Shown here: positions 4,096-51,784 of the stretch, piece by piece
How the letters are laid out: each line of letters begins with the position of its first letter
How positions within the stretch are numbered: the stretch's first letter is position 1
Assembly (NCBI GenBank): GCA_051294905.1
Contig: CM119374.1
Location: 20,584,001 to 20,648,000, forward strand
Origin: Botryllus schlosseri
Lineage: Eukaryota
Length of the DNA stretch: 64,000 nt
Direction of reading: 5' to 3'
Translations under genes and position numbers: made by a program
The notes under the pieces: generated by a model
Seen by the model: the letters and a program-made list of their open reading frames with translations, nothing else
Databases searched by the model: none
What the model was told of the DNA's origin: nothing

Positions 4096-6092
4096 TAGAC
4101 AACTTTGCGGAATCATGTTCAGAACTTTATTTTATACCTAAATTACCGACTTTCCGTGTTTCTACTCAATCAGAAATTGCCGTAATTTTGACTGAAAGTC
4201 CCAATATTGGCATGTTTACAGAAAAAGCAGAATGTGCATTGTGACGTCAAGTACATGACATCTCTATTCTCACCACAGCGGATATGTGTGATTGTGTGTT
4301 CGCCAAGACGCTAGGCGAATATTCGAGTTAGTTGTATGGCGAAGGACTCGCTTGTATGGTGTTAAAACTGAATCTGAGTACTTGAATGTAAGTATGAAAT
4401 GCGGACGCGCTTCAGGTGGTGATTCGCTCGATCCCACATCAGTGGAACCCCTATCAGCTTCGTATGATGGGTCGGTTGGTAATCTGTAGTGTGATCAGCG
4501 TAAAAGCTAAATGAAATGCAGTATGGTAGCGGCCTATGTATAATTTGGTGGATTACTTCGTTTCAATTAGGAATCTTGCTACAATCAATCACAGGTGTTA
4601 ATATGGAGGTTGCCAGCTTAAATGCCAACTATCAGGGAGAGTTTGTGCTGACAGAATAAGAGTGAATCACAGCATTACCATGATTTCAATCAGCTTGTTG
4701 GGATGGTGATGCATTGAAGATGTCTTACTATAGATATGAACAGGATTATGGCCACAGAATTATAACATCTAGTTTGATGCATGAGTGAATGAGCCTCATT
4801 AAGATGAAACGGCGAGTCCGTTGCCAAGTAATTTCCTAACACTACACTTTTCAGGAAGCCGAGAAACACTGCACAGGAATTTCGTCCGATTGCTATGGGG
4901 ATTCTGCAGAAAACAACACGGAAAATCCTGCCTGCGCATGTCGTTACTGCCATCCGATCAAAAGTCACATCCAGTAGTTTCAAAGGATTTCAATTTTGAA
5001 ATGCTTCATTGCGCATGAAAATAGTTTTATTGAAAATAGTAAATGCAACAAACTAATCCATCAACACTGCTACTGTATCAGGAAGAGAAACATATCGGGT
5101 TTTGTGTCCAGCAATATCATCATCCGAGCTAATTTTGACGATGCCGCTACTCAAATAAAATTGATGAACTCTGCCGTTCCTGGTCGTGTTTTGACGAGTG
5201 CATTGACTTCTTCATTGCAGTAATCTAGAGAAGGCAAAAAAATATCACAAGGTGTTATAACACAGTCAGATTGAAGGCAGTATTCCTTCTCAAGTATCAT
5301 TAAATAAAGGATTGCAAACTGTATCCTACAATGATGCGTGTGGCTTGTGAATATGGTGAAATCTTATAAGGGTTGTTTTGAACAGTTAACAGAGTACTTT
5401 ACGACGGTTATGGTGATACTGGTACTTTCTCATCTCCGCTGAGCTGCCAACATCTTGAGAGGGACATAGATTACGATATAGTAATGGATCATGGGTATTA
5501 TCGTGTTACTTTTGCTGCTTACATGATAAGTAGGCTTCCTGACTCATAGGCTACAGCTTCATCAGTCTATGATTTTATCAGGGTTGTAGCCAAGTGGCAA
5601 ATTTCCGAGTCACAAGTCATCTCACTTCTATATAGTTTTGGCTCGAGTCGCATCCTTTTCAATTATCCACGGAGTCCATAAAAGCCAGGTTGGAATCCCG
5701 GTACGTTTAGCGCAATATCATTGGTGTTCCAAGGCGGTTTTCGGCGTCACACCTGTGTGCAGTCAGTGGAATCTTTGGTGTGCACGAGACACCTATTCCA
5801 TATTGGCATAAAAGAAGGTCAGCGACGTAACCATCAGGTCATGAAGTCAGCTGGTTACATACTCCCTTTTCAGTAACTAATGCCACTACTTCATTCAATG
5901 AGTGAAGTGGCTTAATTTTAGAATACTTCCACTTCAAAAGTTTTTGAAGGCATATACGGTACCGTACTTAATTCTACATGTATATACTTGAGTGCAAACA
6001 ATAACTACTTTCGTTACTACCACAGTCAATACTAATAGAAACGGTTAGTTACAGTCTTATAGTACTAGCTGACTGAATACATTTTCACTTAC

Positions 6093-23590: not shown

Positions 23591-26500
23591 ATGAAGGAGC
23601 CTTGTTGGAAATACGCCATATTCTGCTTTCATCCCAAGTTCGACACGGGGACGTGGACTATAACAGCTGCTTTTTCCACAGTGGTGAGTTGGTGTTTTCA
23701 ACAGTGTTGCTATAATTGCTTTCCGCCCTTTGACATGCTTTGGATATGAATGCCTGTGACACCGTGTTCACTTGTAATACTTCACGCTATTGACCGTGAA
23801 TGTGTATCGCTTCAGTGTTGTCAGAGTCATAACTGTCATACGTATGAATGTATTTTATTTACCAGTCTAATCTTAGGCACAAAATAATAATAACAATAAC
23901 GATAAAAAGAGTCATTGATATGAAATATAGAGTTCGTGCCAAATGTATTCGTTGCATGACAAGATTGGATTTCTAATTTCGCTAGCTATAACTTCAATTC
24001 CGACAATAAGATGCGTATAGTGAAATGTAATTTCGATTTATCGAGACGTGGCTGTCGATTTTATGAATTATGACGCAGCAGCCGTACTCCGTCTCAAGGA
24101 TTTATGACGGGCCGTATGAGTAATCATCACCTGCGGGTAAAGTAATGTTGGTTTTAGTAATTTCTCATTCGACCTGTCTCCTTACTTTCGTAAATTATGA
24201 CACACCCCAAGAAGTTTACTTTGCCCACGGTTGATAGCGATATACATGTAGTCACAGCTCAATACCAATAGAGATTTAGGTCATCAGTTCAGTTGTATAG
24301 TTTCATGCAACGCGCACATTATGTTCGTATTTTCAAGAAACCCTTTGTACCATCATGATATCAACTCATCTAAACCATGTGTTGCCCATGGTGTCCTATC
24401 ACTAGCGCAGCCGAGCGCTATTGTCTTGGATTACAATGAACAGCATCCTGGGCAATTGTTTTGGTGTATGGTAACACTGCGATGCCGTTATGTCATGAAA
24501 TATCCGACATTTCTCTGATCACTTCGATTACAAAACGCGGTAACTATTACAAGTTTTGCGCAACTATATTATGTTACCATTACTGAAGAGTAGTTATGTA
24601 TGTCGGCGTTTTGTCTGTACCTGTGGATTGACGCGATTTGCGCCTTCTAATACAATGAATACAACGGAACAGCAATACATTCGATTATTCCAGACTTACA
24701 TTATGATTGTTCAATACTCACGCGCGTGATGACGTACCTCTACTCGTCCGGCGTCCGTGCAATTAGCACTCGAGTAAAACGTTGTTCCACTCGGCCACAT
24801 GACTTTGTGAATGTTGATTATCGTTACATACTTACATTTATATCACGGGAGGTCATATTAAGCTGAAGTGTGTTGTAATTCAATAGACCGTAGTTAACTT
24901 TCATGGAATAATTAAACGTTGTAATTTCTGAACGGAAAATACGTATCACGAGCGCATAATATGGGTCTTATTTCATTACGAAGGTATATTTTTGATTCCC
25001 ATGACCCGGTGTGTAGCATAGCAAGCATACCTGCAGAACACTTCGAAAAGCAGCCAAGCGACGCGCGTTTATAACTGTATAGTACACCTTCAATAAGTTA
25101 TATTCTGCGTTTGCAATACGTATCGGTTTTCGTGTGCGTTTCTGTAATCCTATCTGGCTATGTTAATCGCTTGATTTGTCGCGGCGTTCGGTTCATCAAC
25201 ATCATATTACTAACGAAATTCGTTGTATGTGAACGTAACATTATTGATGTGCTTGGGATTGGAGCTGGCCCGTTTAGTTTTCAGTGGACTTGTTATAAAT
25301 AGGAATAGTAATTCCAAATTATCTGAATGGGAGCTAGTGCTTGAAATACTCATTCAATCAAGTTTGTTCTTGGTTATGCTTTCACATAATCCGTTTCACT
25401 GCGCAAAGTACACCAGCTGGCAGCTATCGCAAGAAATTGCCTTCAATGTCTACTCGGTGATTACCTGATTATCGATATCATGACGCGTGACCGTATCATG
25501 TAAAACGCAGAGACCGAAGGTCATTAAGCGATACGGATTTGAGAAATGTTTGTAAACATTAACACCGCGTGGGAAATTAAATCACGGAGGGCGAGTCATG
25601 TCGCCTTGACTACGCGACTTAGCTCAGCTCTATTCGCCTCGCCGCGTCCGAGTCGGATTTAGGCCATCCAGCAATCAATGCCCAGCGGACTAATTTTTGT
25701 GATTCTAAATCAAGATGTATTTCTCAAATTCCGACGACTTGAGCGTGTTCAGTGAAGTTATTTTGTTACGAATTCCTGTAAGATTTGTTGTGAAATTCCA
25801 CAAGACATGTTTAACATATGAACAGTTCATTCGATTGGGGTCGCAAACTCGTATATTTGGACTATCAATCGTGTACGGAATCAATACCCTTTGCGCCGCC
25901 AATGAATGCAAATTTTTGTACTTGTTTACGACGTTTCGTTCTACACTTGCGCAATCAATTATGACGAAACATTAAACGCAATACATACGCTCCGATGGAT
26001 ATACTGGTAGATGAAAGTCATCTGCTGCCGCTAATATAGTACATCCTGTGAATGAAGCTGTTTATGTTATCATGCTGAATGAGCTGTACAGTGTACAATC
26101 GCTCGATGTAGAATGGCCCGAGGACAATTGATCCGTGAAATTAGCAGTCAACATGGCCCTGCTAAGATTTCGTGACTTACCAGCCTATTAATAACGTACA
26201 GAAATTTCCTGTTCGCATCCTAATTAATACTTGGTGTAAAAAGTCAAGGTCGTAAAGACGGTCCAGAACAGCTACAATCAAAATGATACATTTTAATTAT
26301 ATGGGCGGCGTGGAAATGATTTCCACTGTACTGTACTGTGCCGATGTCGTACATAGAATATTTTTGAACATCATTGATTTTGCGAGTGGTACTGGTCTTG
26401 TTACCATTGTCTATGTATCGTACCTCGGAATTCGCAGCATTTGTTTTATGGCGTTAGTCAAAATGTTCAAATATGCTATCCACATTCGAATACATCTCGA

Positions 26501-29500
26501 GATACTATGTTACATATTTACGCGATCCATATTCATTTACGACGTGGGCTAAGCGTTATTCGTCACTTGGCAACCTTATATTACTTTCAACGCTTCGCTT
26601 AACGGATTAATATCAAACCCTGCCCGTGTGTGTATTAGGGCGTTCACGATCGCTCGAAAAAGCTACTTATGTCAATAATCTTTGACAGCCGTCTCCCAAT
26701 TGCTGGTTACAATCGTTCATCATAACTTGCTATAACACTTAACACTGCTGTCGTACTGACTGCTATTATGCAATTTTTGTGAGAATTTATCTGGGTAAAC
26801 ACTTGACAATCTTGACTGCCGTGTATATATCAGACATGAGATGTTGATACACCGGGGCCTACGATAACTTAATTAAGTTAATTAATTAATTAATTTTGCT
26901 GATGTAAATAGTACATTCGAGATATATCAAACGACCAAACTTATTGATGCTACGAAAGTTTATAGAGATAGATATACTCCCAGACATCGAGGTTTTCAGA
27001 AATGTTAACTGCCAATATCACAAAAATGCATTCATTTTCGCCACATTTCGATGGAGTGTTTTGAAAACAAATTGAGTACAAAGGAAATGAGTTTTCGTAA
27101 AAACGCGGTCCTTCATTTAATATCGCTCACTTTGTACCACACAAATGGACTAACATCGACGAGATATTTGTATCGGACCGAAATTTGAATATCGACCGAT
27201 TCCCAATGTACATCAAATTGCTATTTTTGGCTTCATTTCCTAGGCAAGACTATAATTCTCGATATATTACATATTTCAGCATGGGCACCGAAGTTAACGG
27301 TTATATTATTCGGATTCGGTATTCCGGGAAACGAAATTGCAATTTTAATTTGACCATACATTTTATATTCACCAGATTTGGGTATGATGCAGATATAATA
27401 TTTGGCAGTATCAATCGCGATTTGGATTCGAATTCGAGCATATTTAATCCTCGCCAAAGTTCCATTTCGTAAGGTTTATATCATTCGTCACAAAGGTGGC
27501 GAGTGGCGACAGGTCGATTTAACTCCTGGACTGTATTTTGCAACCAGCCATGTAATCTATACTTGGATACCTGCCTGATACGCTACTTCCGGCCATCGTG
27601 ATCAGACTTTGGTGATACGTTGTGAAAATATATCTTCATCTCGACGGACAGGAAATCCGTACATTGAACTCAGTATGCAATGCCGCAAATTGCAATCGAA
27701 GATAGGTTTCGCTTATACGATGGTTGCCTGATCGTTATCATTTACTGTTATATTCCGCATCACGCATCTGGTTATACCAGCCACCAACCTAACGGTCAGC
27801 ATTCTGCATTTCCTTCTATTCGGTTAGGCTATTTGGTGGCGCAAATAGACTCGATGTTTTAAGTGGACAATGTTGGTTACGCGTTTCCATCCATGATTCT
27901 GTCTGAATCTGATCTGAAGCGGAGGAATATTATTTGCGATTATGTGAATCCTAATCCGTTCCGACCTGTCAAGAGCTGACCTCGCCAGCGACAGTTTAAC
28001 ACGCAAAACTGCCATTCGTCTATGATTAAATATGGCGAAATGCCAACCTTAATTTGGATCATTGAGCGGATATATGCCCAAGTTGGGTATTGTACTCGAG
28101 ACGTAGCACTGAAATCGAATAAAATCGTAATTTGAGTCCGCGAACATGTAGAATATAAATGCCCCGAAGTTGCTTGCCCTCTGTCGCTAGTTCGATTTTT
28201 ATCTTCAGATCAAGTATGCGTCGTATTTTCAAAATTAGATTTTAATAAACTTACTAATGCGGCCCGCTTAATGCACACTGCTCCGATAAATTATGCATGA
28301 GAATCGGTGCCGAGGAAAGAAATTCCAGACTGTACTTAAACATTCGGTTCTGAACGACATCCCATGCGCTCACCAAGTATTTTATATTTTATAGGAAGAC
28401 TTTAGTAGGACTGTATGGTCAGTAGTAAAGTGGAGGCTGCAGAATTTCAATGATGGACACATGCACGCCATTGCTACATTGTGACGTCACAACATTTTGA
28501 ATTCGAATTAAGGGGATGCTGTGCCTCTTTTCCAGTCCAGTTAAATCCGTGGAAAGTTGCATTTATTTTTGAAAAAAGTTGCAGAAGTTGCAATTTCACC
28601 ACGTTTTGCTCGGTTGACTAGCAAAAAAAAATTCAACTTCCCAGATTGACTAAAAAAAAAGGTCAATTTTCCGGCTCAGCTCCCGAAATACCCGTAAAAG
28701 CGTTACTTCGGTGCTGATTTACGGTGTTTCAGTCGAATTTGGTCGTGTATTTCTCCAAAATCGAAATTACTTTCATGAAAAATCGAAAAAGTTGCAAAAT
28801 GTTGCAAAAAGTTGCATGAAAAAAATGGTCAAAAGTTGCAAAAATTTGCACTATAAGATTCCTTCAAACAGCTTAAAACAGCATTCTACATATCTTACGA
28901 GTATTTAGGAAGCTGCCGGAAGCTGTAAAAAAAAGTTGCAAAAGTTGCGAAAACTTGCCCTACTTATTACTTATGCATAACGTACCACATACTAATGGCA
29001 TTTTGTCGTGTGTGTTCAAAGGTGTTATGCTTGATAAGGGTTGGATTCGTGTCCGACCGTCATTGACCGAACATTGAATTTGTTTGATCACCTATAGTGA
29101 AAAAGACGCGCTGTTCGTAATCCTGTTACATAAATATGCCTCCCTGTAAAAATCTGTCAGCACATACCGGCTGATATGAAACCTATTCTGCTTGAAAATA
29201 AAGCTTTATACTCCAACCCGCTTCCCAAAATAGTCTTGCTTTGATAAGGTTCAGAAAAGTATGTCATCGCTCGGTCAAATAAATGTTATTCCGAGCGGTT
29301 TTCGAAGCAATACGCACCGACTCAACTTGTTTATCTTTGTCATTGTGCGAGTATACAAGAGTTAGTGACCTGTTGTAGCTGTGTGGAACAGCTGAAAGGC
29401 TATCGTGGCGAAATAACTGGATTGTGAACTCGCAAAGATAACCCCAAATTCAGGCCACGTCATTGCTTACGACTGTAGGGAATCAACATGTTATTAGATA

Positions 29501-32500
29501 TGTCACGGACCACAGTAACCCATATTGGAATCAGTAACTCGTGGTAACTTTACTGTCGTTTCGATGACTCCGACAGTGATTTGTAATCGTATTTTAAACC
29601 TGAAATGTTGCACAATTCAAAATCAATCGGACTTGTTCGATTTGGTATCGCGTGATCTAACAGTAATACCGTACCTCTGGCGCAGATTACTTTGTCACTG
29701 ATAATTTCTTATCCAATCCACATTTTAATTAGACATATCCCCTATAGGCACGGTCATCATTGCTCCATCTCGCCACGGCTAGTTGTGTTTGAAAGCTTGT
29801 CAGATAGTTGTGCGAGTGTAAAACTAATCTTTCACCGCGACTATTCGTATTCTGGTGGTCTGCCGCAAGATGGTATCGGATAATATCGCCATATTAACAG
29901 CGATAGAAATCTACGAGATGGTTTTTGTTGGACCCCAATCTTCGCCATCTGCTACTAATGATACGTTGACTTTGATGTTCAATAGGGCCTCGTGAACCGG
30001 GGTTACTGACACTGAGATATTAACAAATAAAGAGACTCTTGGACGTGCAGAACCGCAGAATTGAATAATAACATTTAATCACGCCGGGCACTTTGATTTT
30101 GAGGTTGTTCTAACCTTTGTCACGTTGAGAAAAGTCTGGAGGTTACGTATATAGTCATATACACTAGACCACATCTATGTCCAAACTCCCGTCGACCTCC
30201 GCCCTATAGTTCAGCAAATTCCAACAAAGAACCGAATTCTTTTCAAAATTTGTGAATAGCTCAGGCTATAGTAAACATTGACAATCCCAACTATTATGAA
30301 TAGGTTCAACGCTCGATACAGCAATATGTGTTGTCAATGTCTGGACAGTACGAATTGATTACATTTTCGCTGAATCGAACCATCGGACAACAGTGATGGG
30401 AATTATTACATGTCACGTGATGAATCACGAGACTTTCCCGCTTGAGACAACTCATGCCGTGAGCGTAATAAACTGGACCGTGTGTTGCGTGTATCTGTGG
30501 AGTTTTCGCCGAAAAGTCCCGTTCGTACTCGATGGTTGTATCGCGGTGTGTTTGCCAGATATTTTTGTTCGAATCGCTTCGCTCTCGCGGAAAGATGCTA
30601 TCTCGATCTTTGTACATTTCGGAAACGCGGATCTTTTGTTCAACGATTAGACACTTCCTCGACAATATCCTATTTCTACGCCCTGCTGTGTTACAGATTT
30701 TTCTCGTGCGCTCACGTCTTGGATAGCGACATGGAATTGATGTTGGCCTTTTTCTTTGCAGATTATTTTCGGTGCTTTATTTTTCATCACGCTCGCCTTC
30801 TCGGCGCCAAAATGTTTTTGTCCGGAGATCTACGAACACATCGACGCACTTTCGCCAAGTAAGTTTTGGTGTGACGCCATCTGATTCTTGACAGATTGCT
30901 GACCCGTCTTTGTAAATATCGTGTTGGGCCCATCTTGGCATCGGCATTAGTTATACTGAGATTCACAGTGCCGCTCTCCTTATGGCTATTTACTATTTCT
31001 GCAGCATACATCTGCGATTTATCACCGTTCCATACCTTTTCTTTGTTTGCAGTGGGCTCTTGACTAGGGTTGGGCTCAATGATACGAGTACCCGTTACCC
31101 GAGCCAGTTACATTCTCTAGTACTGAATCTATACCGCTCTTGCGACTACCAAATATTTATCGATGATGATAATTATTATTGTTTTCATAATTCTTCCTCA
31201 TCACATACGAAATGATTCTTGATGTAGTTGATCTCATAATGTCTTGTTTGCGGTCGAGTGAAGGGTACATATTTTAGCTTTTTGGGCTATAGGCCGAAGC
31301 TATATATCTTGTCATGATGTACATTGTACAGTTACACAGTAGCATACACATGTATCTATATGCGGCATCAGCCCCGTTACCATTTCCGCAAAAATATCAA
31401 ACCATATCATTTGTCACATTATCGAAATTATAACGTTACAAACGTATCGAGGGATTCATCGATATCGCTGAGACATTTGCCCCTGTCGTATACCCAATGC
31501 TTGAAACTCACTGACACGTTGATCAACGATTGGGAACGCATATTTACGCATGAGATCATCACCTATACACACTTTCCATCCGCTGCAGGCTGAAAACTAT
31601 GTTTAGCCAACTTTTAATTGCCCCCTGGCCCCACGCATAGGGATTAGCCACGCGTTTCGGGGCGGTGTAAATCAATTTCTTTCGTGCGTTGTGCATGGGA
31701 TTAATAATGGGAAGAAATCACCCTTTTATTTTGCAAATGTGCAGTGTGCATTGTGCATTTGTGCAATGGATCGCTATTCAATGTTCGTAGTTCGCTAATT
31801 GCTATCGTAACTAGCCTTCTTTTCCTTTCGCAGCTTTCAAAGCGATATACGCCATCGCCGTGCTGGTACTCCTGGGCGTCGTCATAGTCTCAGTACTGTG
31901 TATGTACGGGACGTTTAAAGTAGGACATTTTCTTCTGATACTTTCAGCGCTTACTATGGTCTTGCGCTGTGCAGTCCATTATTGTTGAAACTACGTGTCG
32001 GAGAGACTAAATTTGTTAAAGATAATGCCATTACAAGTTAGCGACTTATTGATCTCGGGTAATACGGTTAGGCCTACATACGTAACACGGTTTTGGTCTC
32101 AAAGAGATTCGATTACGTCTAATTGCTCTGCGTTCGCGTGACTGCCGTGGCCAAACCCAGAGACACAAAATATTAACTGTTCATATTTCCTAGGGTTGCA
32201 TTTAAAACAAACGGTGTTTTAAAACACTTAGTTTTAAACATGTTTTAAACAGTGTTTTAAAATAGGCCTTTCAAAAAAAATTGTGTTTTTTTCAAGTTGT
32301 AAAATTATGCCATAATTGTGTAAATACTTTACAAAAAAACATGTTGTATGAGCCTACGGACGATCACCACCCGATGTAGCCGACGTATATCGATATGGGA
32401 TGGTTGGACTTGGAACCCTCAAAATAGTCCGTTCAAGTGCAATAGTACATATATTTAGTCAACGGAGTTATTTTTACCCTATATTTCAATTGTCAAAGCC

Positions 32501-35500
32501 AATTCACTATGACGTCACAATTCAATATTCGTGACGTCATGGCTTAAAATAAAACATAAAAAAACAATAAAAACATGTTTTAAATTACGGCCGTGTTTTA
32601 AACATGTTTGTTTTAAATTGATTTTTGTTTTAAATGCAACCCTAATCTCTCCCATTCAATTTCGATAACGTGACGTCACACGTAACGTCAGGTCATCGCG
32701 GAAAATGTTTTCGCCTCATCAAGTTCCATCGCAGATATTATGCTTCAATACTCTCCCGTTAGAATACCGTACGACTAACCACACTAGCGTAATGGTACGG
32801 ATACTATCAGTATCAGCAATTTGATTTTTTGCCTTTATTATTGTGTTTCTATTTTAGGCAAGGGCGTGGATGCTTTTGCCATACGTGATAACACTGGGAT
32901 TTGTGTCTGTGGCTACTTTTGCCGGTTCCATATTCATATTTATTCAACTGGCGTATATCGATCAGTACTTGCTATTCGATAACAGCACGTATTGGAATCT
33001 AGCGAAAATGGTAAGTCCAGCGTTCAGCATTACGCTTCTACATGAAACGGTGGTAGTGTTTCGCGTATATTAGCCCGGTATTTTCACTATGCGTGAATAT
33101 TGTTTTAGTGACGGATTTGCTTTCGTATCGAACTTTTCTGCTCTGGTGCGTGATGAGGTGATTCCTAATTAACAATCCTCAGTTACGAAATATGGATTTT
33201 GCGTTGATGACAGAAATACGCACTGCTTAATTAGCCTGGTTTCCGAATGTGACGTCATAATCTTCGGAACAGGAATTTGACAACTGATTGGTACACTGTC
33301 TCGTCTATCGCGCGCTTATACACGAAATTTTGATGTCTCGATATCCATATGGATTCATGCATTCAACGTCACGTGTAGTCGATATCACCTGTATCCGAAG
33401 TCAGCAAACTTGAATTCATGTGATCAGTCGTGTTTTCTAATTCGTCATATTGCTACCACACAGCACGAATTTGCGCGTGACTCCGAAACAGTGGTCGGAC
33501 CTATGATAGAGCCCTTGTTCGAAGACCCCCAAAATTCCGTAAGGCGTGTGTGCACCGGGTACTTTTGCAGCGACAATTGTGTGCCTCAATTATTACTCTT
33601 CCTCCGTACTTGTGGAGTCAATTGCTGTAAAACTTGAAGATGTTGGTAAACGGTTGATGTGATTCACGCTGTCTAGATTCCCAGCACTTACAATGCAAGG
33701 AACCAATCACAATGCCTGTGTGACACTGCTAGCAGTCATATCGCCGGGAATTAGGCGTAATGTTTAGAGCAAATTTAGTTCGATAATGATGTTCAGGCAG
33801 AAGTAGGCTTCATATTGGGACTTTGAATCCTCGTAATTATTGTATAGTATTCGAATAGCTAGCCCTAGCGATCGGGGAAATCAGATATCCGGGTTGGTTT
33901 GCATTTGTCAAAATCTGCTGTAGTCTCAGCTGGCGGTTACACGCATGGAGCCCTATGCACTACACTGTGAATTTCCTTCACCCTTCACGAGTGCCGAGTC
34001 GTTTTTGCTTTCTGTCACAGCCGTCGCTTCGCCTTCGAGAAGCTTCATTTTCTCTTAATTTTTGCATGTTGCTATTCCGACAGTTGAGCGAATTTGCGTA
34101 CCGCTCTGAACAAGCATTCGGACCTATCGTAGGACCGTTGTTCGAAGACCCGCCCAATTCCGTAAGAGACGTGTGAAGCCGGGTATTTTGTGGAAGCTAG
34201 CGGGGTGTTTTTGACTTGATCTCTGTCGACCTAATCGGAAACATCAGTAGAGACATAGGTCGCCGAACAGAAACGAAAAATCTGGCTTTGGAAGTCGCGC
34301 ACGCGCAAACACGAAGCGGACGACACTTTCGCGAATTTTGATGGTCTCTAGATTTAACCTGGTTTGGAAATGCCGGCCGGGCCGGTCCAACCTGGTTACA
34401 AAATCGTGGCGTATCATTCGAATACCAACCACAACCACTAACTAGTACGGTTAGAACGCCATTTTGAAGCGACTGGATTACTTCACAATACAAATCGCTG
34501 TGATTTAAAATAAATCTATCCGAATTCGATAATGCGAGCCGATCAGAACTTAATCTTATTCCAAAAAAAGACTACTGTTTATATTGAATCCCGAATCAAT
34601 ATCAATCAAACTTGGCAATAGTGGTAACTGCAGCATTTATGAAGAGAGCCGGGGAATCACCACGCTCCAGTGTCGCATTATGAAGTAAAAAGCAGATTGT
34701 GACGTCATATGAGTACAGTGACGTTGACAGCCAAAGTACAATGCAGATGGAATGTTTTTAAGCTGGACCAGTCATTTCAGCTAAAGAGAAAAATTTATTG
34801 CTTGGTCAACCAACATTAACAACAAATTGAACTGTAAAAATACCTAAAACCTATAACACACACAAAGAGTTTATAGACAATAATATTAATAATAGCAAGT
34901 AGAATCTGCGTTACAGTACCGACGGGTCCGGCGATACGATCCTTATGATCTTCACGACCAACCGGAATTCAGCAGATTATAAGTAAAGATATACACAATT
35001 CTCCGGGTAACTAGTGAATGACTTTACGCAACCTATCTCTTTATTTCAATAATACAACAGCCAATGGAGATTCCATGGAATTGACATCTACTCGCGAGTA
35101 AGTCGAGTAAGTCCTAGGTTTTCATGATGTGACGCAGAATCAAAACCTTTGATTTCGCTATACGCGGACTCGTCTATAGACGTTCCTGTAGTGTAGTATA
35201 TTTATTACACACAGTTGTCATGAGACAGACAAGGGCGTGGAAACCGCTCTCGTAAAAATCTGGTGTTCGAATCACTAACGTATTTGATAAAAGTTTGAAG
35301 TGCGTCCTTCTCGCTACTTGGGATTCCTGCTGCTCGCGACTAGGAGTTGAAATGACTGACCCTTCGAAAGATTGCCTTTGAAAGGCTTGAGCCAAACAAA
35401 ACATTTTGGATGACAGTCAGGTCGCCTGTCCTCTCTTCTGATTTCACCAGTCAATCAAACTCGGCTGGAAATATAGCCAATCTATTCAATAGTACATCGG

Positions 35501-38500
35501 GAATGTAGTTTATACGGCTTGGTTCGACACAGATCGCCAGCAAGTGTTGAAACAAAATTTAACACTCTTTCGATGCGAGTGGTGAATTTCACCGAGTTCG
35601 CTCGCCCCTGTCATACTATGTGCGCACAGTATGGTTTCATATGTCCTGGGCTCGTGGCACTTCAGCACGAATCGTGCGCGCTTTGGTTGCAGTGTGGTAA
35701 TTTACGATTATCCACAACCTCGGATTGGTCGTGTTTCGACATCCATAATATTAGTACAAAGCCGCGTACGTTCATGGAAATAACATTAAGGTGGTATCAA
35801 CTATCAACCCAGAGCATTGTCACATAAAGCAATTAAATACGCATGGTCTAAGTCGAAATAAGTCCAAATTATCTTCATATGGTATATTATCTTCATATGG
35901 TATAGAACTGCCATTATTTTGTTTGCGGTCGTATGAGAGGTACATGTTTGACCTTTTCGCACCATCTCTACTGCTTATTGCGTCATAGCGAGTGGTAGGC
36001 CACTAGATTTTGCACAGGCCTACTAGTAACTGCTAGTTCGTCATATTACCTTTGTTTGTTTTCGCCTGGGAGAAAAGTCCCTTTATGGGTCATCATAATC
36101 TTACGATGTTACGTGTAAGTTGATGACATAAACATCTGAGTTCGGTACTTTCTCGCCAGCGATTAGCAGCTCTTTTGGGAAAAACATATCCTATTCGTGC
36201 GTGGAAATTGCGCCAGTGCTCCAAAACCAGATTTTTATTTTACGAATAGCTAGTGGAACGGACTTGAATGTCGTCTCAAAGTACCGTAGCGGTTGAACCT
36301 AAATTTTAGCCCGCGTGTTGGTGCATCTCCGCGGTCGCTAGGTGACAATGGCCGCGTGTCTACAGCGTGAAAATACAAAATGGAACTGATTCGCATGACC
36401 GCTAAAATCGAGAACTAATCGGTTACTTGATCGAGTGTATGGAAATTTCAAACCCGATTAGACGTTGATTAGTCCCTTCTTACATGCTATTTGTTTGGTG
36501 ATGTTGCTATTGGGTGGCGTGGCGGTGCATTACTATTCCTATACGATGGTAGCCTACTAGAACTAATCTATCGTCAATACGCATTATCACAGTGATCGGT
36601 GTTGCGGTGTTAACGTATGCCTTGTTTTATTAATCGTTAACAGGTGACATAGAATAGAAATTAGTATGCATGAGCTCTTATCATAGTAGGCTATTTATTC
36701 ACCTGTAGTATTTTCGTTGTTAATTGTAGTTAGGTATTAGTATTCGTAGAGGGTGAAACAGAACTTTTGCTGTACAATGTGCATAGTTTGTATTTTCGTG
36801 CCATAGTTCGGTAATTATCGTGTTCACAAACCCACTAACGGTACCCCTACATGTCGCTTTACTGTAACATAAATTTCGTATCGCCGAATTTCGATGCCTC
36901 AGCAACTATTTACACCCTATCCTTCCTGATTACATTTGGCTATTTGTGTAACTACCGATATTGCTAACCTAAAACGCCGCAAAGAGATACCCGTTTTTCA
37001 GAAACGCTGCATAAGCCCAATTTATGCTCACCTGTGATGCATACCAGTATATTATCTGCTATTCTACCACTACGTAAAATTCGCGGTACCACTTCGTGTT
37101 CCTATTTATCAGGTATTGAAAGACGATCTGATAGCACAACTTGAAGGAATGTGGGCTTCTATCAACGTGCTTCTGAAACAGTTCTTGAGCATGGACATGG
37201 GAGACGAACTGAATCTTAACATGCTGCTGGATCGGGTACGTATCATATTTTATCGTAAGCGCGACACAGGCCAGTCGCTAGGAATAATAAATATACACCC
37301 GGGCGTAGTAGCTAAATAGCATGAGCACATTTAAAGTGCCACAGGTAAAGTTTGAACTCTCTGCGTGTGTTCGCTGTTCGTTGATCACGCTCAGTGTAAG
37401 TAGAAGTACTTGACGACGATATAGAAAACGACATGGTTCGAAAATATACGAGGGAGAAGGGTGGCGATTAGGTGCATGTGTAATGTGGGTAATCTTTTAG
37501 TTTAACAGAGTAGGGCGCACAGATTTTCTTTCTGGCACTGTTACTGCACATTGTACAAGACTACAAGGATGAGATTTTTTGCCCTCTCAATTAGTCTGTT
37601 TTTATTTCCTGGTCTGAAACTGTCTGTGATGGAAATTATGTCCGATAGTTTGGTGTCTAATTCGTATTATCAATCGTGACGTTTTCTAAGCCATAGGATA
37701 TAAGTTTTGCCCGTGTATATCTTGGAGCATCCTTCGAATTTTAGGCGCTTAAAGACGAAGTGATCATTTTGATGGGAGCCAGCAAGAGAGTCATGAAGAT
37801 GTCGGCGGTTTTTCTGCTGCTGGGATTGAATTGGCTTTTCGTAAGTGTCTATTGCAGCAGATTTTTGCACGCTGACTATATTCGCCTCGGTTACTTGCAG
37901 TAATGCAGTTAGGTTTGCTATGTAACCATATAGAATTTTACAATATGTAGTCAGTTGGGAAAAAAACACGTACAACGATAAACTGAAGTGATCTGATAAA
38001 CCACTGACACCGCACCGTCTTACTTTCACACCGAGAGTAGTTGTCTTCCCATTCACTCAGGACTCATCTAACGAATCAGGGTCTGCTTTGTTATTCACTG
38101 CAAGATGGCGCCAGATAGCGAACTTTATCTTGTCCGTATTCCCAGCAACGTAGCTGCCTAATCCAAATCAAATCGCAATTCGCCAGCACACGTAAGTGCT
38201 GTACTGAAAGTTTCAAGCTTTTCCACATTAGATTAGGATTAGAACTATAACTACCCAGTTTATTACAAATTAGATTAGAAGTACGGAGTTCACATAAATT
38301 TAGAAATTGAATTAAATTCCGAATTAGCAAGAAATACAATGATAACCATGTTAATTCCATGTCAAACGTGGCGACGTTTAACGTGCCCGATAGCCTGCGA
38401 TAGTATACGGCAAGTGCGTGGTCTACGGATAGCAGCTTTACAATATAACTAACTTGCAATAGCTGATACGAACGTCCTGAGTGAATCCTTGACTGACAGT

Positions 38501-40167
38501 TCAACAGATTACAGTTGCCTTTTGCAGATATATTGTACGGATGGTTATTAATTCATGTAATTTAAGCAGTAGGTTACAGCATAAATGAGTCTCTCCGAGT
38601 CGATGTGCGCTTGGTTTTATACCAAGGGCGAATATAAGTCGCGTGATGTGGTATTGTTTCATAACGGATAGGAGAGAGAGAATCGGGGCTCTCCATACAA
38701 ATCAGTTCATTCTGATGATCATGAGAATAGCAAGCGTCTGTACACCAAGCTTGGCTCGCTTCGCACGGTACAGCTCTTTTATAGCATTTTTAGGAAAACC
38801 AGAATTTTGATCACAATTAGATTACCGACATCTCTCTCTAATCTCTAATTTATCAACCACAATTGTCAAATTGTTCTAGTTTGCCTGTACTACCGAAGTA
38901 GCCTAAGCTGTGCAACCCGTACCTTACAGGTGTCGTCAATGGTCGTCGCACTATCACATTGGTTCAGGCTGCGCTCGAAGATGGTGAGTCACTTCACGCC
39001 CGTCCCGAACATGATCCTGAGCCAGAGGATAGCCACCGAAACCACCCGGAGTTCGGGCTCGATTTCCATGAGCGACGACTACAGCGGTTTGTCACTTCGT
39101 GAGTTGAAGCGTATGAAGTCCAAATCATACAAGAAGTCTCCTGGCTCCGTTGTCTACTCCAGTACCGTTAAGAGCTCGAAGAAACTTTACGAGATCAGTA
39201 GGCTTGAAGTTGAGGGTAAATTTCCGCGGGACTCGTTTCTTTAGGATGCCGCCGGGATCTATGGCATCACCGGAATCGCCGTCTATCCATGTCCGAATGT
39301 ATTCCGCTCAATAGGTCGGCGCGGGGTCCGATCAAAACGCAATTGAAGGAAGCTACCTTTTTGATAGCGTATTTTCTTCGTAATCGCTTGAATATTGTGA
39401 TTTTTGCACCGTAGCTGTAGTATCATATTGTACACCTTTACCGCTGCTGCTGCAAAAATGCTTGATTCCGGATACGAAGTCCGGACCCGGAATGTAATCA
39501 CCCGGCCTATCGGAACTTGCTGCTAGACACTTTCACTAATATTAGTTTATATTTATATCCGCACGAAACGTACACAGTGTCAGGCGCGTAGTAAATTGCA
39601 TTTGACGACTGTTACCCGCAATGTTAGTGTGACGTCACAAAACCCGCTGCGACGTCACAAAACCCGCTAACTCCGCGTCTGTTTGCTCTAGTTGCAGCTA
39701 TACAAAAGTGTACATTGTACATCTGATGCGAATCGTTGTAGATCAAATAACCCAAAATGCGGTGCAATAATGACGAAATACTCGCCCGTACAAGCCATTG
39801 GGTATGATGCTAGTGATCACACACACGTCTTGAAAGTGCCGAAAATCATAATTTATCCAAATACTTCGAACTAGTGTTGATACGAAATGTGCCAAATGCG
39901 TCATTCTGTAGTTGTCCAGAATATTTTACATTTATACCGTCTCGCTTGTCACTCTTTCCTAATCACGTTATAGATCTTCTTTCTACTACACTTTTATGTC
40001 ACAGAGCCCGTGAACCTGCGAGATATATGTCTTCCAGTCCTTTCGCGTTAGTTAACTTCTTTATATCATTTCAGCTGAAGCCAGAAGGCGTTGAGATTCG
40101 CTCTGACGTTGTGATAGGGGCAAGTTACAAAGTCAGTACGAGTGTGTTGGGTTGTGTTGATGATTAG
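23591..40167 (+). CDS. LAPTM4-like four-TM protein, paralogue A. Exons 23591-23683, 30762-30858, 31834-31919, 32858-33010, [33464-33538 and/or 34084-34161], 37113-37235, 37745-37840, 38930-38983, 40075-40167 (or exon read-through 38930-39244); about 289-371 aa depending on isoform
   Basis: All exons have AG acceptors and GT donors, and phases join. Peptides FCFHPKFDTGTWTITAAFSTV|, IYAIAVLVLLGVVIVSVLCMYGTFK|, ARAWMLLPYV, ALKDEVI...LNWLF| align by eye with vertebrate LAPTM4 (CCHVRTGTILLGVWYL|, IAIAISLLMILICAMATYGAYK|, QRAAWIIPF, YRDDVM). The join across the 7-kb first intron is inferred. Confidence 0.78.
28539..28962 (-). mobile_element. TAGGGCAAGT-family hAT MITE, one end lost
   Basis: Reverse-complement copy of 60701-61102 (AAGTTGCA repeats, ends AAAACTTGCCCTA). 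Confidence 0.75.
32191..32644 (+). mobile_element. hAT MITE, 21-bp perfect TIR TAGGGTTGCATTTAAAACAAA (paralogue A intron 3)
   Basis: TIRs read directly; flanks ATATTTCC / ATCTCTCC (6/8); TTTTAAAC subterminal repeats; inverted copy at 41823-42226. Confidence 0.85.
33464..33538 (+). CDS. Cassette exon 4a of paralogue A (HEFARDSETVVGPMIEPLFEDPQNS, phase 0/0)
   Basis: CACACAG acceptor, TCC|GTAAGG donor, 75 nt; protein-level duplicate of 34084-34161. Confidence 0.75.
34084..34161 (+). CDS. Cassette exon 4b of paralogue A (LSEFAYRSEQAFGPIVGPLFEDPPNS, phase 0/0)
   Basis: CCGACAG acceptor, TCC|GTAAGA donor, 78 nt; protein-level duplicate of 33464-33538. Confidence 0.75.
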
Positions 40168-47473: not shown

Positions 47474-50400
47474 ATGCAATACACGAGCTGTAGCAGACCG
47501 TCGGCTTTCGGCTGTGCCTACACAACGCTGGTGAGTTATTCATGCGAATTGCAATTCTCTGCTGTCCGCACATTTCTTCGTACGTTCATATATATATTTT
47601 CGTGCCAAGATATTACACAATTGCAGTGCGCACATTGGGTTTTTCACATGTTCCATCAATGAAGAAATATCCATTCGACATGGGTTTGATATTCGTATCG
47701 TTACCGTACTTTTCCATTACTGGTAGTAAGTGACATAGAAGCGAATATCCGAAGCAATTGATTTACATTACATCCTACATGTAGTACACAGTACACACTG
47801 CGTGAATAGTTGGTTTCTTGTCACCATTAACCAGGTTAATGATTTGATTTAGCTGAGACAAAGATGCTTTATGCGCGGACTCTTTGCTAACGAATGGATG
47901 ACCTCTCTTCCAATATAGTAATTTTTTTGCAGATGATATTTGGCTCGCTATTTCTGTTCTTCATCCCATTCGTGTTCCACCCTGGAATGTTTGTCGACAC
48001 AATCAACCTGCGGGGTGGTGAGTATACCGCTGTACTTGTAATGCGAATTACTATAGCCACATGAATTGGTAACCAACTTGGATATCGGTTTCGCGAGCAG
48101 CACGTATCACTGAACAATGAACATTTCATGTTTTTCAGTACGATTTCCTCATGAAAATACCGAAGCACACACATGTTAATAATTCGAGAATCGAAAATCC
48201 TTTAGTATATAGTGAGATAAAGGTAACTGAAATGTGGCGAAACACACGCTGTGTCCTGAAATAGATCTTTTGGTACTCGCAATACCATTTTAACGTGTTC
48301 GTCAGTTATTCTGGAAGAAGAAAAAAACGACATTTTGTGAGATTCAACTCACGGCAGCTTCCCATGAGCGACAAAAATTTGAAACCATGCTTCCGCAATC
48401 CGCATAGGCTACTATATAGGATTATCTTCAGCATTGATACATAATGTCGATAAAATGTATGTATCATCAGACTGAAACTGATTTATCTCATGTTGGAAAT
48501 TGCCAGAAACATCAAGACATACATTGAATTGAAGGCGATGGCAAAATTAATCAACTCCAGTCGCGTCCTGGAATCTTCCAATGGTTGTCTCTCCTCATAC
48601 ATAGGCACTAGGCCAGGAGTGGGCAAACTTTTGAGCCCGCGGGCCGCATACAACATCTGAATCCATTCGCGGGCCGCACTACGTAAAATTGGGATTATAA
48701 ACCAAAACGCAATATTGGTATTTGATTATATAGTGATGACATGGAGTTAATATATATGCTTATTTAAAACAAACCAAACATTGCTTCGATGATATCGTAC
48801 ACGTGTCAGAAACAGTGGCGAGATTTCATAGGCTGGTCGACCTCAATAACCAATTTTTCAAAACTCTAGAGATAAAAGTCGGTTGTCCCGATTCTTAGAA
48901 CAGGATTGAAATTTAAATTTGTGAGCATCGATCTGCTCATAGATTTACTAATCGCACTTATGGTTCAGTTCCAGGACACGCAATGCTGACAGCATCATAA
49001 CCATGTTAGCTTCAAGCACACTTCTACTATGTGTAGATAAAATACAAGTATCCAATTCTACGCATACAGAGAACGAATCTACCTAAGACGAGCGCGAATC
49101 GATTTTTATAAGCACATCACTGAGATAATTAAAACTGGAGTTGTAAATCTGATCCGAATAATGTCAATCTCGTTTAGGATTTCTTTGATGTTTAGCAGTT
49201 GAAACCTTTCAAACTGGGTGGGCCTTTAGATCGGGCTGTCGCTCCCGACATTAAACATAAAAAAATAATATAGGAAGTATTTACCTTAGAACAATGGTTC
49301 TCAAACTTTTGAAGACACGACCCCATCCCCCCTTATGATGGTGAAAGACTTCGCGTACCCCATATCGTCATATCACAAAACGTAACCAGGACGCTAGCAA
49401 ACCTAACGGGTATAGTTTCATGGCATGGAAGATTACCACTGTGGATGAGAGATTTTTAAATATGAAATTCCGACTCAATACAGAGGAGCAATTATGAATT
49501 ACATTTACACATAATGAAAATTTGTCCAGTAGAGTCGTGATGTTAATTCAATTCGTCCCCATCAACAAATTTTCAAATGACGTTTTCATTCAGTCCATGC
49601 CCCGGCGTACGAGAACAAGGATGTAAACAAGGAAGTGCGAAGACGCAATGATTGAAATTCGAATTGACGATCAAGTCATTACTAAACCATTAAAAACTTA
49701 TCATACTTTTTAGATTTACTGGTGGATGCCGAAACGCAGTACACGTCAATATGTATCGTATGCTTTGGATCGCTATTCCTCGCCATTCTCTCTGTCTTGT
49801 GCGTTACTGGAATACAGATGGTACGTTTGCAGTCATGTCCAGAGGCTAGATCTGCTATGAGTTCTAAATTTCCCGGTGTCAATTATTCGTTGACGAGAGC
49901 GATAAGGTGGATCCGTATGGAAGACATACTGTATTTTCGTTGCAGGACCGCGGTGGGTTGTTGGTTCCATATTTGATAGCCGAGAGTCTCCTCGCCTTAC
50001 TCGTCATCACTGCTTCATGCATCATCATCTTTTACATCAGCGCGATTGATTATTTGCTACGGAATATAGGCTTAGTACCTAATGCGGTTGGTATATTCAC
50101 TTCGATTACACTAGCAAGTATGCCGATTGCCGGCCGAAGGATTCAAACGCTCATTTTTCCAGGAAAGGATTGTGGTTATCAAAGCGGTTGTGGTCCTGAT
50201 GATATTGATGATCAACTGGATATTTGTGAGTATTTGTTTGTTTGGTATTCATGGTGTTGGCCCACTTCTACGCATTTTGTAAGACACCGTGGGCGTATGA
50301 GTCGAAAAAAAATTGAAGGGAAGGGGGTAATTTTTTACGAATTTAGCGGAATCCCCCATATCCATCGAGCCTTTAATTTCAACACCACCCTTTACACACG

Positions 50401-51784
50401 ATTCATAGACGCACACACACCCTTCCGTAGCGACCTAAATCCGGTATTAGACAATCGATTCACGAACAAGCCTCAAACCATTGAGAATCTGATTTGTAGT
50501 CGCGCGAACCGCGAACATTTTTTGTGATAAATAATTGAAATTATCAATAATGAAAGTACTTGTAAATGCATTGCAGATGATCACTGATCAAGTGGTGCCT
50601 TCGAAAGTTAAGGAACGTAATAATAAATCTTGAGCATATGAGCAATTTTCACGCCGCACGCGGTTAACAGGTTTCAGGAAGTTCTAGCAGGTTGACTTTG
50701 GCTGGGTCCATTATTATTTATTGCTTCCTTTAAGCACGTTCCTACTTAGTGACCTCTGGTACAGATTGTTGCTACTCTAAGGGTATTGGAATAGATCACA
50801 TGCACCAGACCAAACAAAGAAATACTTCATTGGTCAGACTCGTGCGATTTCAAATTCGCACTTATTCACGGGGACAATATTTTAATGTGCGAGTTGCATT
50901 CCTACCGCGGAGGTCTGATTGCAAGGACAGTACTATATTCGGCGTCAGCAATTGAAGGCTCCATCAAACACGCGGCGATTTTTATCGCCGTCAATCATTC
51001 TGGGAGCGCACTTCGTGGAGTCGCATTTCGAGGGTAAAGGCCGATACCTAATAGTCCCCGATTCGCATTCTACACACCACTACACTAAAGCATCCAACTG
51101 TCTCACGCAATGCTAGGAAGATCCCTTTCGCTCATGATTATAAAATTATGCGCATTTTTTTGAAAAAAATGAGTCGGGAGGGTTTACCATAATAAAACTA
51201 GAAAATACAGCTATCTAAATCACGAGACGAACAATTTTTGGTTGAATTCACCTGCCCAAAAATACTCTATATTGATTTACGAAAATTCACAAAAAATGTG
51301 GGGATGACCACTTTCGCCCCCTGGCTATGCCAATGCTGTCACTATGCACTGTTTAATGCGGATATCCCAATGAATACGCGTTTGTCAGTGGCGAGATAGC
51401 GCAGTGGCATAATCCGCGGCTGCAACACCAATGGTTTGCGGGTTCGAGTCCGACCGGGGGTCGACTTCAGAATTCCTATACCTAAGTGTTGCAGGTTTAT
51501 CTGGGCTCCTCCTCGCCAACTCATCGGCGTAAGCGGTGTCTTACAAAAAGCCTAGAAGCGGGCCGTACTATAAGTCGGCAGTTACGGAATTAAAATGAAT
51601 GATATCGGCCTGGTGTAAATGACCGTAGTAGTCGACAAACACCATGAATACCCCAAAACAAACAAACGTGTTCGTTGTTTTTCAGATCACGCCCGTAATC
51701 ATGGTGAGCATCCACTGCCACCATATTTTTTCGGGAACCGTCGGGCAAGGCAGACAGCACCAACTGCCTTTCAACAGCTACTGA
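47474..51784 (+). CDS. LAPTM4-like four-TM protein, paralogue B, 183 aa. Exons 47474-47530, 47933-48017, 49714-49820, 49946-50086, 50163-50225, 51686-51784
   Basis: Canonical splice sites, phases 0-1-0-0-0, 552 nt in frame. Exon-by-exon homology to paralogue C (CAYTTL|, IPFVFHPG, GSLFLAILSVLCVTGIQM|, GLLVPYLI, NWIF|, ITPVIMVSIHC). Confidence 0.82.
48614..48690. mobile_element. Terminus of a Charlie/Buster-type hAT element (paralogue B intron 2)
   Basis: CAGGAGTGGGCAAAC followed by two GCGGGCCGCA motifs. Related termini at ~58615, ~62670 and ~63211. Possible decayed transposase C-terminus on - strand around 48950-49200 (weak). Confidence 0.5.
51390..51667 (+). mobile_element. tRNA-derived SINE (paralogue B intron 5)
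   Basis: A box TAGCGCAGTGG (51397-51407), B box GGTTCGAGTCC (51441-51451), GGTTTATCTGGGCTCCTC core, CAAA-repeat tail. No tRNA acceptor stem. Confidence 0.75.

Follow-up and report, generated by a model that had tools for sequence, protein, structure and literature searches.

This locus raises the question of whether two short and similar segments in one intron of a Botryllus schlosseri gene are mutually exclusive exons. The window, as we call the whole stretch of DNA that was analyzed, comprises 64,000 nucleotides (nt) (positions 20,584,001 to 20,648,000 of contig CM119374.1). The two segments, 4a (33464..33538, + strand) and 4b (34084..34161, + strand), are located in the intron after the exon that encodes the third transmembrane helix (TM3) of a predicted four-pass membrane protein. 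A first-pass annotation, made from the sequence alone, had proposed that they are tandem-duplicated cassette exons and candidates for a mutually exclusive pair. Our analysis favors another explanation, to which we assign a probability of about 0.7: a conserved optional cassette exon was duplicated once together with its immediate splice signals, and the pair is an ordinary duplicated cassette rather than a strict either/or switch.

Both segments have the structure of real exons. Each is flanked by AG on the upstream and GT on the downstream side, with U2-type GTAAG donors in both cases, and frame 0 is open throughout. The predicted peptides, HEFARDSETVVGPMIEPLFEDPQNS for 4a (75 nt, 25 codons) and LSEFAYRSEQAFGPIVGPLFEDPPNS for 4b (78 nt, 26 codons), are exactly those quoted in the first-pass annotation. 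Both lengths are multiples of three, the intron between the segments is 545 nt, and a 4a-4b join stays in frame without a stop codon. When all exons of the gene were compared with the window by tblastn, the 4a and 4b peptides matched each other with an E-value of 5.5e-7 and 62% identity over 24 residues. The residues kept in both peptides are EF..SE...GP...PLFEDP.NS. No third copy or look-alike was detected in the 64-kb window by tblastn with every exon of the gene, and in the entire 495-Mb assembly, searches at the protein and the DNA level returned cassette matches at 4a and 4b only. Since only two places in the genome match, the pair is not a dispersed repeat. In the local alignment, the similarity of the two DNA segments spans from -36 to +29 around the exon (33428-33567 against 34045-34190) and ends sharply. 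The wider flanks beyond these limits scored no better than shuffled sequences.

The description as tandem-duplicated cassette exons holds, and the duplicated segment has a homolog in Styela clava that is annotated there as an alternative exon. The two S. clava isoforms of LOC120327744, X1 (342 amino acids) and X2 (317 amino acids), differ by a 25-residue insert, LSEFKYRTQVVGGLINPLFVDPPNS, which is present only in X1, between ...WNLAKM and VLKEDL (alignment A2). The insert site is the place of 4a and 4b, and the X1 insert is 62% identical to 4b. The S. clava cassette and those of the window share the intron position between ...WNLAKM and VLK(E/D)DL, the phase 0/0, the size (25 codons against 25/26), and the TC(C/T)|GTAAGA donor, and their intron sequences are similar on either side. 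At the S. clava locus (L006), the cassette is present once, 608 nt past the TM3 exon, and a third stolidobranch species, represented by a Logan genomic contig (L008), also has one copy, LSEFKYRTEVVATIIQPLFVDPPTS. In contrast, the genome studied here has two copies, 545 nt apart, and it is the only one among those checked in which the duplication was seen. The Clavelina counterpart of the intron measures about 420 nt and carries no cassette. The Ciona and Clavelina proteins lack the insert in alignment A2, and altogether seven of the nine homologous proteins have no insert at the site, the exceptions being S. clava X1 and a Logan transcript (P0019) with a non-alignable insert. Thus, the cassette predates the duplication. 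Furthermore, 4a and 4b resemble each other (74% nucleotide identity) more than either resembles S. clava, and the duplication is therefore lineage-specific.

Additional cassette-bearing sequences were also searched for. A protein-database search for short fragments carrying the cassette (query P0017:120-200) returned only one unspliced fragment, and extending the search to a profile of the whole family yielded one more, divergent member and no additional isoform with the cassette. In contig L008, a second cassette-like stretch (..LFQDFNNS) at 5535-5582, 168 nt past the real cassette, was rejected: it contains a stop codon, has no donor and matches with E-values of only 0.69-4.6. It is probably a chance match, the alternative being a decayed second copy. 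The insert of P0019, which comes from another species, consists of 17 proline-rich residues, VSDTPHTPPPSTGPISM, between ...TKM and VLKAD, at the same exon junction. P0019 is a more distant member with a much longer tail, and its insert shows no evident homology to the cassette. The exon junction past TM3 seems to take up insertions repeatedly.

RNA reads and contigs from four runs were mapped on positions 32700-37400 of the window. They comprised two contig sets (X4 and X5) and two raw runs (X21, of which about 6% was read, and X23); X23 had no reads on the stretch and hence provided no test. In X5, a 748-nt contig with a depth of 80.9 joins 33009/10 to 37112/13 (GT..AG), and both copies are skipped. 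In X4, the contig of the preceding exon (exon 4, depth 45) continues with GTA and two letters that mismatch the intron. This continuation is consistent with exon 5, which starts with GTATT, but not with 4a or 4b. Thus, the second run agrees with the skip. Exon 4 has a depth of 45-78 in the transcript contigs, and the only X4 sequence over 4a is an unspliced 176-nt piece with a depth of 8, the intron background being 2.5-5.6. The raw depth in X21 was about 9 for exon 4, about 6 for exon 5 and 0.8 for 4b, with 0 reads on 4a. No spliced read or contig containing 4a was found in X4, X5 or X21. Skipping of both copies is the dominant form in the sampled runs, and the default splicing lacks both segments.

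The reads on 4b deserve a separate description. In X21, four reads on 34133-34161 run into the first 16 nt of exon 5, and the 34161>37113 splice is precise. The 5′ part of these reads is histone H3 mRNA, fused at 34133, and the four reads represent one chimeric molecule. Trans-splicing, an internal 3′ splice site or a paralogous sequence ahead of 34133 was considered and rejected, since the 5′ part is histone H3 from another contig and the fusion is a library chimera. The source of the fused mRNA is a histone H3 gene on the minus strand at L001 (G000:C15:7399332-7402361). Isoforms with and without the exon are accordingly on record in two places: X1 and X2 of S. clava, and here the contig that skips both copies together with the one 4b-exon 5 junction, a thin support.

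We then compared the coding sequences. The first-pass annotation stated that the peptide is conserved while the DNA has diverged, which points to selection on the coding sequence. The pair does not behave as stated: 4a and 4b are 74% identical in DNA and 62% in peptide, their 19 differences are distributed 5/6/8 on codon positions 1/2/3, and the NG86 omega is 0.46. With this even spread and this omega, the pair alone gives little evidence of coding selection. Comparisons between species gave a different pattern. The S. clava and L008 cassettes differ at 5/3/13 sites by codon position, with an omega of 0.12, and 4b differs from S. clava at 7/5/17, where the synonymous sites are saturated. The cassette lengths are 75/78/75/75 nt, all divisible by three. 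Judged from these sequences, the cassette evolves between species as expected of an exon that is translated and subject to purifying selection (omega about 0.12). The nonsynonymous divergence (dN) to S. clava is 0.45 for 4a and 0.31 for 4b (about 19 against 14.7 nonsynonymous differences). In addition, 4b retains the LSEF.YR start and the TTRAGCGAATT beginning, whereas both are lost in 4a. By these comparisons, 4b is the ortholog-like copy with respect to the S. clava alternative exon, and 4a is a lineage-specific extra copy whose protein sequence has changed about twice as fast.

The flanking introns were analyzed by local alignment of 80 nt on each side of every exon with S. clava, in comparison with 500 shuffles. 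The intron after 4b aligned with its S. clava counterpart with a z of 3.7 (4/500 shuffles), whereas the flanks of five constitutive exons gave z values from -1.2 to 1.2. The downstream flanks of 4a and 4b aligned with each other with a z of 4.1, whereas that of 4a against S. clava gave -1.1. The claim of the first-pass annotation that the intron just after each donor is conserved was therefore borne out, with the similarity of 4a and 4b reaching to +29. The shared sequence in the 4a downstream flank (33539..33567, + strand) is GTAAG..GTGTG..CCGGGTA.TTTTG, of which CCGGGTA.TTTTG is common to 4a and 4b, partly present in S. clava and deleted in L008. Upstream of 4a, the branch point and 3′ splice site region (33428..33463, + strand) aligns with the flank of 4b. 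The 4b upstream flank (34045..34083, + strand) is similar to those of 4a and of the S. clava and L008 cassettes. In the three-species alignment, ..TTG.TAT...ACAG is found ahead of the acceptor, and GGGTAT, TTGTG and TAGYGGKG.TTGA..TGAT are found past the donor. These downstream blocks form the intron element after the 4b donor (34162..34221, + strand; GGGTAT..TTGTG..TAGYGGKG.TTGA..TGAT), the conservation of which extends to S. clava and, in part, to L008. Conserved flanks of this kind are expected of a regulated alternative exon.

Related motifs occur elsewhere in this intron. A third copy of the GCCSGGTATTTT motif, GCCCGGTATTTT, is located at 33073..33084 (+ strand), 63 nt past the exon-4 donor, with one mismatch to the 4b motif; this copy is not conserved in S. 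clava. An extra copy of the G-rich/U-rich motif, GCGGGGTGTTTT, lies at 34200-34211, 39 nt past the 4b donor. For the GCCGGGTATTTT motif, four of the nine matches in the window fall within 33073-34211 (1.1 kb), all on the + strand, and 4.1 matches are expected per whole window. G-runs and U-rich tracts right after a donor are classic intronic enhancers. The idea that the cassettes have obviously weak 3′ splice sites was dropped, since the pyrimidine content of their acceptors is no lower than that of the constitutive exons.

Several points weigh against a duplicated, optional cassette as the explanation. The X1 and X2 isoforms of S. clava are known as database annotations, and the intron conservation was the single significant outcome of 14 comparisons. 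The 4b acceptor was not seen in use in the runs, and the sole spliced evidence for 4b is the one chimeric molecule. Although X21 covers both exon 4 and exon 5, it listed no exon 4-exon 5 joint; its reads on these exons may be short inserts running into adapter. Thus, the claim about the main isoform rests on the contigs. Moreover, the RNA sampling is thin: it draws on two contig sets, from which rare variants drop out, and on about 6% of a single raw run. High inclusion in some tissue or stage would still be compatible with this sample.

Among the other explanations, the one that survives best concerns only 4a. Here, 4b alone would be a functional optional exon, and 4a, a young duplicate, would never be spliced in and would drift. 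The absence of raw reads on 4a is consistent with this, and so is its unspliced piece, the depth of which (8) is near the intron background (2.5-5.6). The higher dN to S. clava (0.45 against 0.31 for 4b), the loss of the LSEF start and of the cross-species intron element (z -1.1), and the substitutions spread evenly over codon positions point in the same direction. However, the reading frame of 4a is intact, as are its two splice sites and the intron motifs close to it, the omega of 0.46 is below 1, and absence cannot be called from an RNA sample of this size. We regard a dead 4a as a serious possibility, although with less than an even chance. That 4a is a second functional cassette has odds close to even, or slightly below.

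A second explanation is a three-way switch, in which the gene produces mRNAs with neither copy, with 4a only and with 4b only, but never with 4a and 4b together, so that two alternative loop inserts are regulated by tissue or stage. In its favor, both copies have an open frame, AG and GT borders, a GTAAG donor and shared flanking motifs, the core residues EF..SE...GP...PLFEDP.NS are present in both, and the related motif past the exon-4 donor could mark a common regulator. However, no spliced read or contig carries 4a, the 5/6/8 differences between the copies are even over codon positions, and a 25-codon open frame persists by chance about 30% of the time. The mechanisms known to enforce exclusivity are U2/U12 incompatibility, a distance of less than 50 nt between donor and branch point, a frame shift with nonsense-mediated decay on joint inclusion, and competing RNA structures (PMC5740500). 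The first three are all absent at 4a and 4b, where both donors belong to the U2 type, 545 nt separate the copies and joint inclusion is in frame. As for RNA structures, the first-pass annotation had suggested looking for docking/selector complementarity. This search gave nothing convincing: only short inverted repeats with 74-86% complementarity, at chance level, were found, and no reverse-strand (docking) copy of the shared GCCGGGTATTTT motif is present in the gene. We therefore consider the three-way switch unlikely. In a more specific form, 4a and 4b would both be used in a regulated three-state switch (none, 4a or 4b) of an outward-facing loop, through a shared GGGUAUUUU-type intron element after the donors of exon 4, 4a and 4b; this form is slightly more doubtful still. 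If true, the three-state switch would show a mutually exclusive pair at a very young stage, shortly after an exon that was already alternative had been duplicated.

A mutually exclusive cluster in the strict sense supplies each mature mRNA with one, and no more than one, of its exons (PMC6071210). The window pair resembles such clusters, for example the Dscam exon clusters and those of the human atlas of mutually exclusive exons (PMC6071210, PMC5740500), in its origin by tandem duplication including splice signals, and in being neighboring same-frame copies of similar length with similar peptides. Unlike in those clusters, the main mRNA here carries neither copy, and the U2 donors, the 545-nt spacing and the in-frame joint inclusion are further differences; no docking/selector pairing was found. 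The strict part of the first-pass proposal thus fails, because the main mRNA joins the 32858-33010 exon directly to the 37113-37235 exon; the contig that skips both copies, S. clava X2 and the insert-free homologs contradict the one-and-only-one rule. A strict pair, or two constitutive exons, so that every mRNA contains one or both of 4a and 4b, is highly improbable: only formal features speak for it (adjacent copies of similar sequence, 62% in peptide, both in frame 0, 75/78 nt long and 545 nt apart), whereas the exon 4-exon 5 joint has a depth of 80.9, the raw-read depth is 0 on 4a and almost nil on 4b against 6-9 on the neighboring exons, seven of nine homologs are insert-free, and S. clava annotates an insert-free form.

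Returning to the duplicated optional cassette, we propose the following scheme. In stolidobranch ascidians, the intron past the TM3 exon holds an optional cassette of 25 codons that is skipped by default. When included, the cassette adds to the large TM3-TM4 loop a peptide that is acidic and rich in proline (EF..R.....G....PLF.DP.NS). In the genome studied here, a segment of about 140 nt, comprising the cassette and the adjoining intron (about 36 nt upstream and about 29 nt downstream), was duplicated once. The 4b copy has kept the ancestral features, namely the LSEF.YR start and the conserved intron element past the donor. Inclusion of the cassette may be regulated through this conserved G-rich/U-rich intron element after the donor, and 4a may be a rarely used second cassette or may be decaying.

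Tandem exon duplication that yields alternative exons is already known, and no new splicing principle is revealed here. New details are this particular case, the gene family restricted to ascidians and the conservation of the intron element. The locus offers a clean and datable example of the onset of an exon array, in which an already optional, conserved exon was copied with its immediate splice signals only, and the outcome is two candidate alternative inserts for one loop. It also draws attention to an uncharacterized membrane-protein family, so far found only in ascidians, in which one loop site appears to take insertions repeatedly. For annotation, the default product should be given without both segments and 4b as an alternative exon, and 4a should be entered as an exon only when reads support it.

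The host gene was reconstructed by mapping homologous proteins onto the window. It extends over 23591-39244 on the + strand, where all its exons lie, and encodes a product of about 320 residues with four predicted membrane helices, a short first loop with two cysteines, a TM3-TM4 loop of about 85 residues and a serine-rich tail. Coding exon 1 (23591..23683), starting with MKEPCWKYAIFCFHPKFDTGTW..., was located by tblastn of the Ciona homolog P0002 (E-value 1.6e-7) and has a GTGAGT donor at 23684. Coding exon 2 (30762..30858), found by tblastn with P0002 and P0010 and bordered by AG and GT, encodes TM1 and leads into the first exoplasmic loop with KCFCP. Coding exon 3 (31834..31919), encoding TM2, was also found by tblastn; the loose ends of nine reads and two contigs at 32858 represent its junction with exon 4. 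Coding exon 4 (32858..33010), supported by phmmer and tblastn homology, encodes TM3 and the start of the large loop, ...LLFDNSTYWNLAKM, and has a strong ATG|GTAAGT donor. Coding exon 5 (37113..37235) encodes the rest of the large loop and is joined directly to exon 4 in the main mRNA. Coding exon 6 (37745..37840), found by tblastn, encodes the loop end and the first half of TM4; loose ends past 37236 in two contigs enter this exon. The last coding exon (38930..39244) encodes the second half of TM4 and a Ser-rich tail of about 95 residues ending in ...KFPRDSFL before the stop codon. Its frame is open, and the tblastn match of P0002 (E-value 2.8e-18) extends to the final residue of the homolog.

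The first-pass annotation placed the two segments in the second luminal loop. The position in the large TM3-TM4 loop is inferred from low-confidence model helices, an N-x-T sequon and the positive-inside rule, and the luminal or extracellular side is presumed. The conserved N-x-T sequon opens this loop, and the cassette site is 12 residues past it. From the sequon and the positive-inside rule, the loop is presumed to face the lumen or the cell exterior.

To place the protein in a family, the 51-residue TM3 exon was compared by phmmer with 1.84 billion representatives, which gave two full-length homologs of 312 and 315 residues. Word-indexed searches with these two brought the total to nine related proteins, and every named one is from an ascidian: Ciona intestinalis LOC100180589, a C. 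savignyi protein, a Clavelina lepadiformis protein, and X1 and X2 of S. clava LOC120327744; the other four are unnamed transcriptome or metagenome entries. The gene thus appears to encode a four-pass protein so far known from ascidians alone, for which a distant kinship with LAPTM or tetraspanin proteins is possible.

The label LAPTM-like, which the first-pass annotation had given to the gene, received no support from Pfam, and the other leads are weak. Single exons had no Pfam match, none of the eight family members tested reached the Pfam gathering cut-offs, and PF03821 (Mtp) was unlisted for all eight at E-values up to 10. Neighbors by protein language model were LAPTM4B and LAPTM5 clusters at 0.84-0.85, scores that the tool rates as a lead only. 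The AlphaFold2 model has a mean pLDDT of 50, and the top Foldseek row is mouse LAPTM5 with an E-value of 0.046 and a TM-score of 0.16-0.20. A structure-based family assignment was dropped, given this pLDDT and the weakness of all Foldseek rows. A sequence search of the PDB with the family profile gave 0 matches. The protein shares with LAPTM4/5 (PF03821, Mtp) the four predicted helices and a similar size; the N-terminal C.H..(K/R)..TGT and YG....L.P(F/Y) motifs resemble those of LAPTM proteins, and we take this as a lead only. In contrast to LAPTM4/5, the TM3-TM4 loop is long (about 85 residues) and the tail lacks L/PPxY. The C-terminal PY (L/PPxY) motifs of LAPTM proteins recruit Nedd4-type ligases, and such a motif is absent from the tail encoded by 38930-39244 and from the tails in alignment A2.

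Tetraspanins (PF00335) have a similar topology, with a small first loop and a large second loop, and the automatic UniProt name of the Ciona savignyi member is 'Tetraspanin'. Weak Pfam matches to PF00335 were obtained for seven of the eight members, with a best E-value of 0.0045 and, for the two tabulated members, scores of 7-12 bits against the 32.1-bit cut-off. However, tetraspanins have a CCG/cysteine pattern in the large loop, whereas the large loop here is cysteine-free: no member of alignment A2 has a cysteine in the TM3-TM4 loop, and hence none has a CCG motif.

Further downstream, weak matches to the TM1 and TM3 exons were detected at 47894-50527 of the window, for example RGGLLVPYLIAESLL...IIFYISAIDYLL at 49949-50059 (E-value 0.02), and another at G000:C4:20690953-20691069 (E-value 0.2), about 43 kb past the window end. 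Judged by sequence, these are possibly diverged tandem paralogs, which would correspond to the 'LAPTM-like B' of the first-pass annotation. No cassette-like sequence was found in the matches at 47894-50527 and 20690953-20691069. In the intron ahead of exon 4, positions 32191-32644 carry an insert of about 450 nt that resembles a miniature inverted-repeat transposable element. Its 48-nt inverted ends are 77% complementary overall and nearly perfect at the tips (TAGGGTTGCATTTAAAACAAA / TTTGTTTTAAATGCAACCCTA), and its interior is AT-rich and full of GTTTTAAA repeats.

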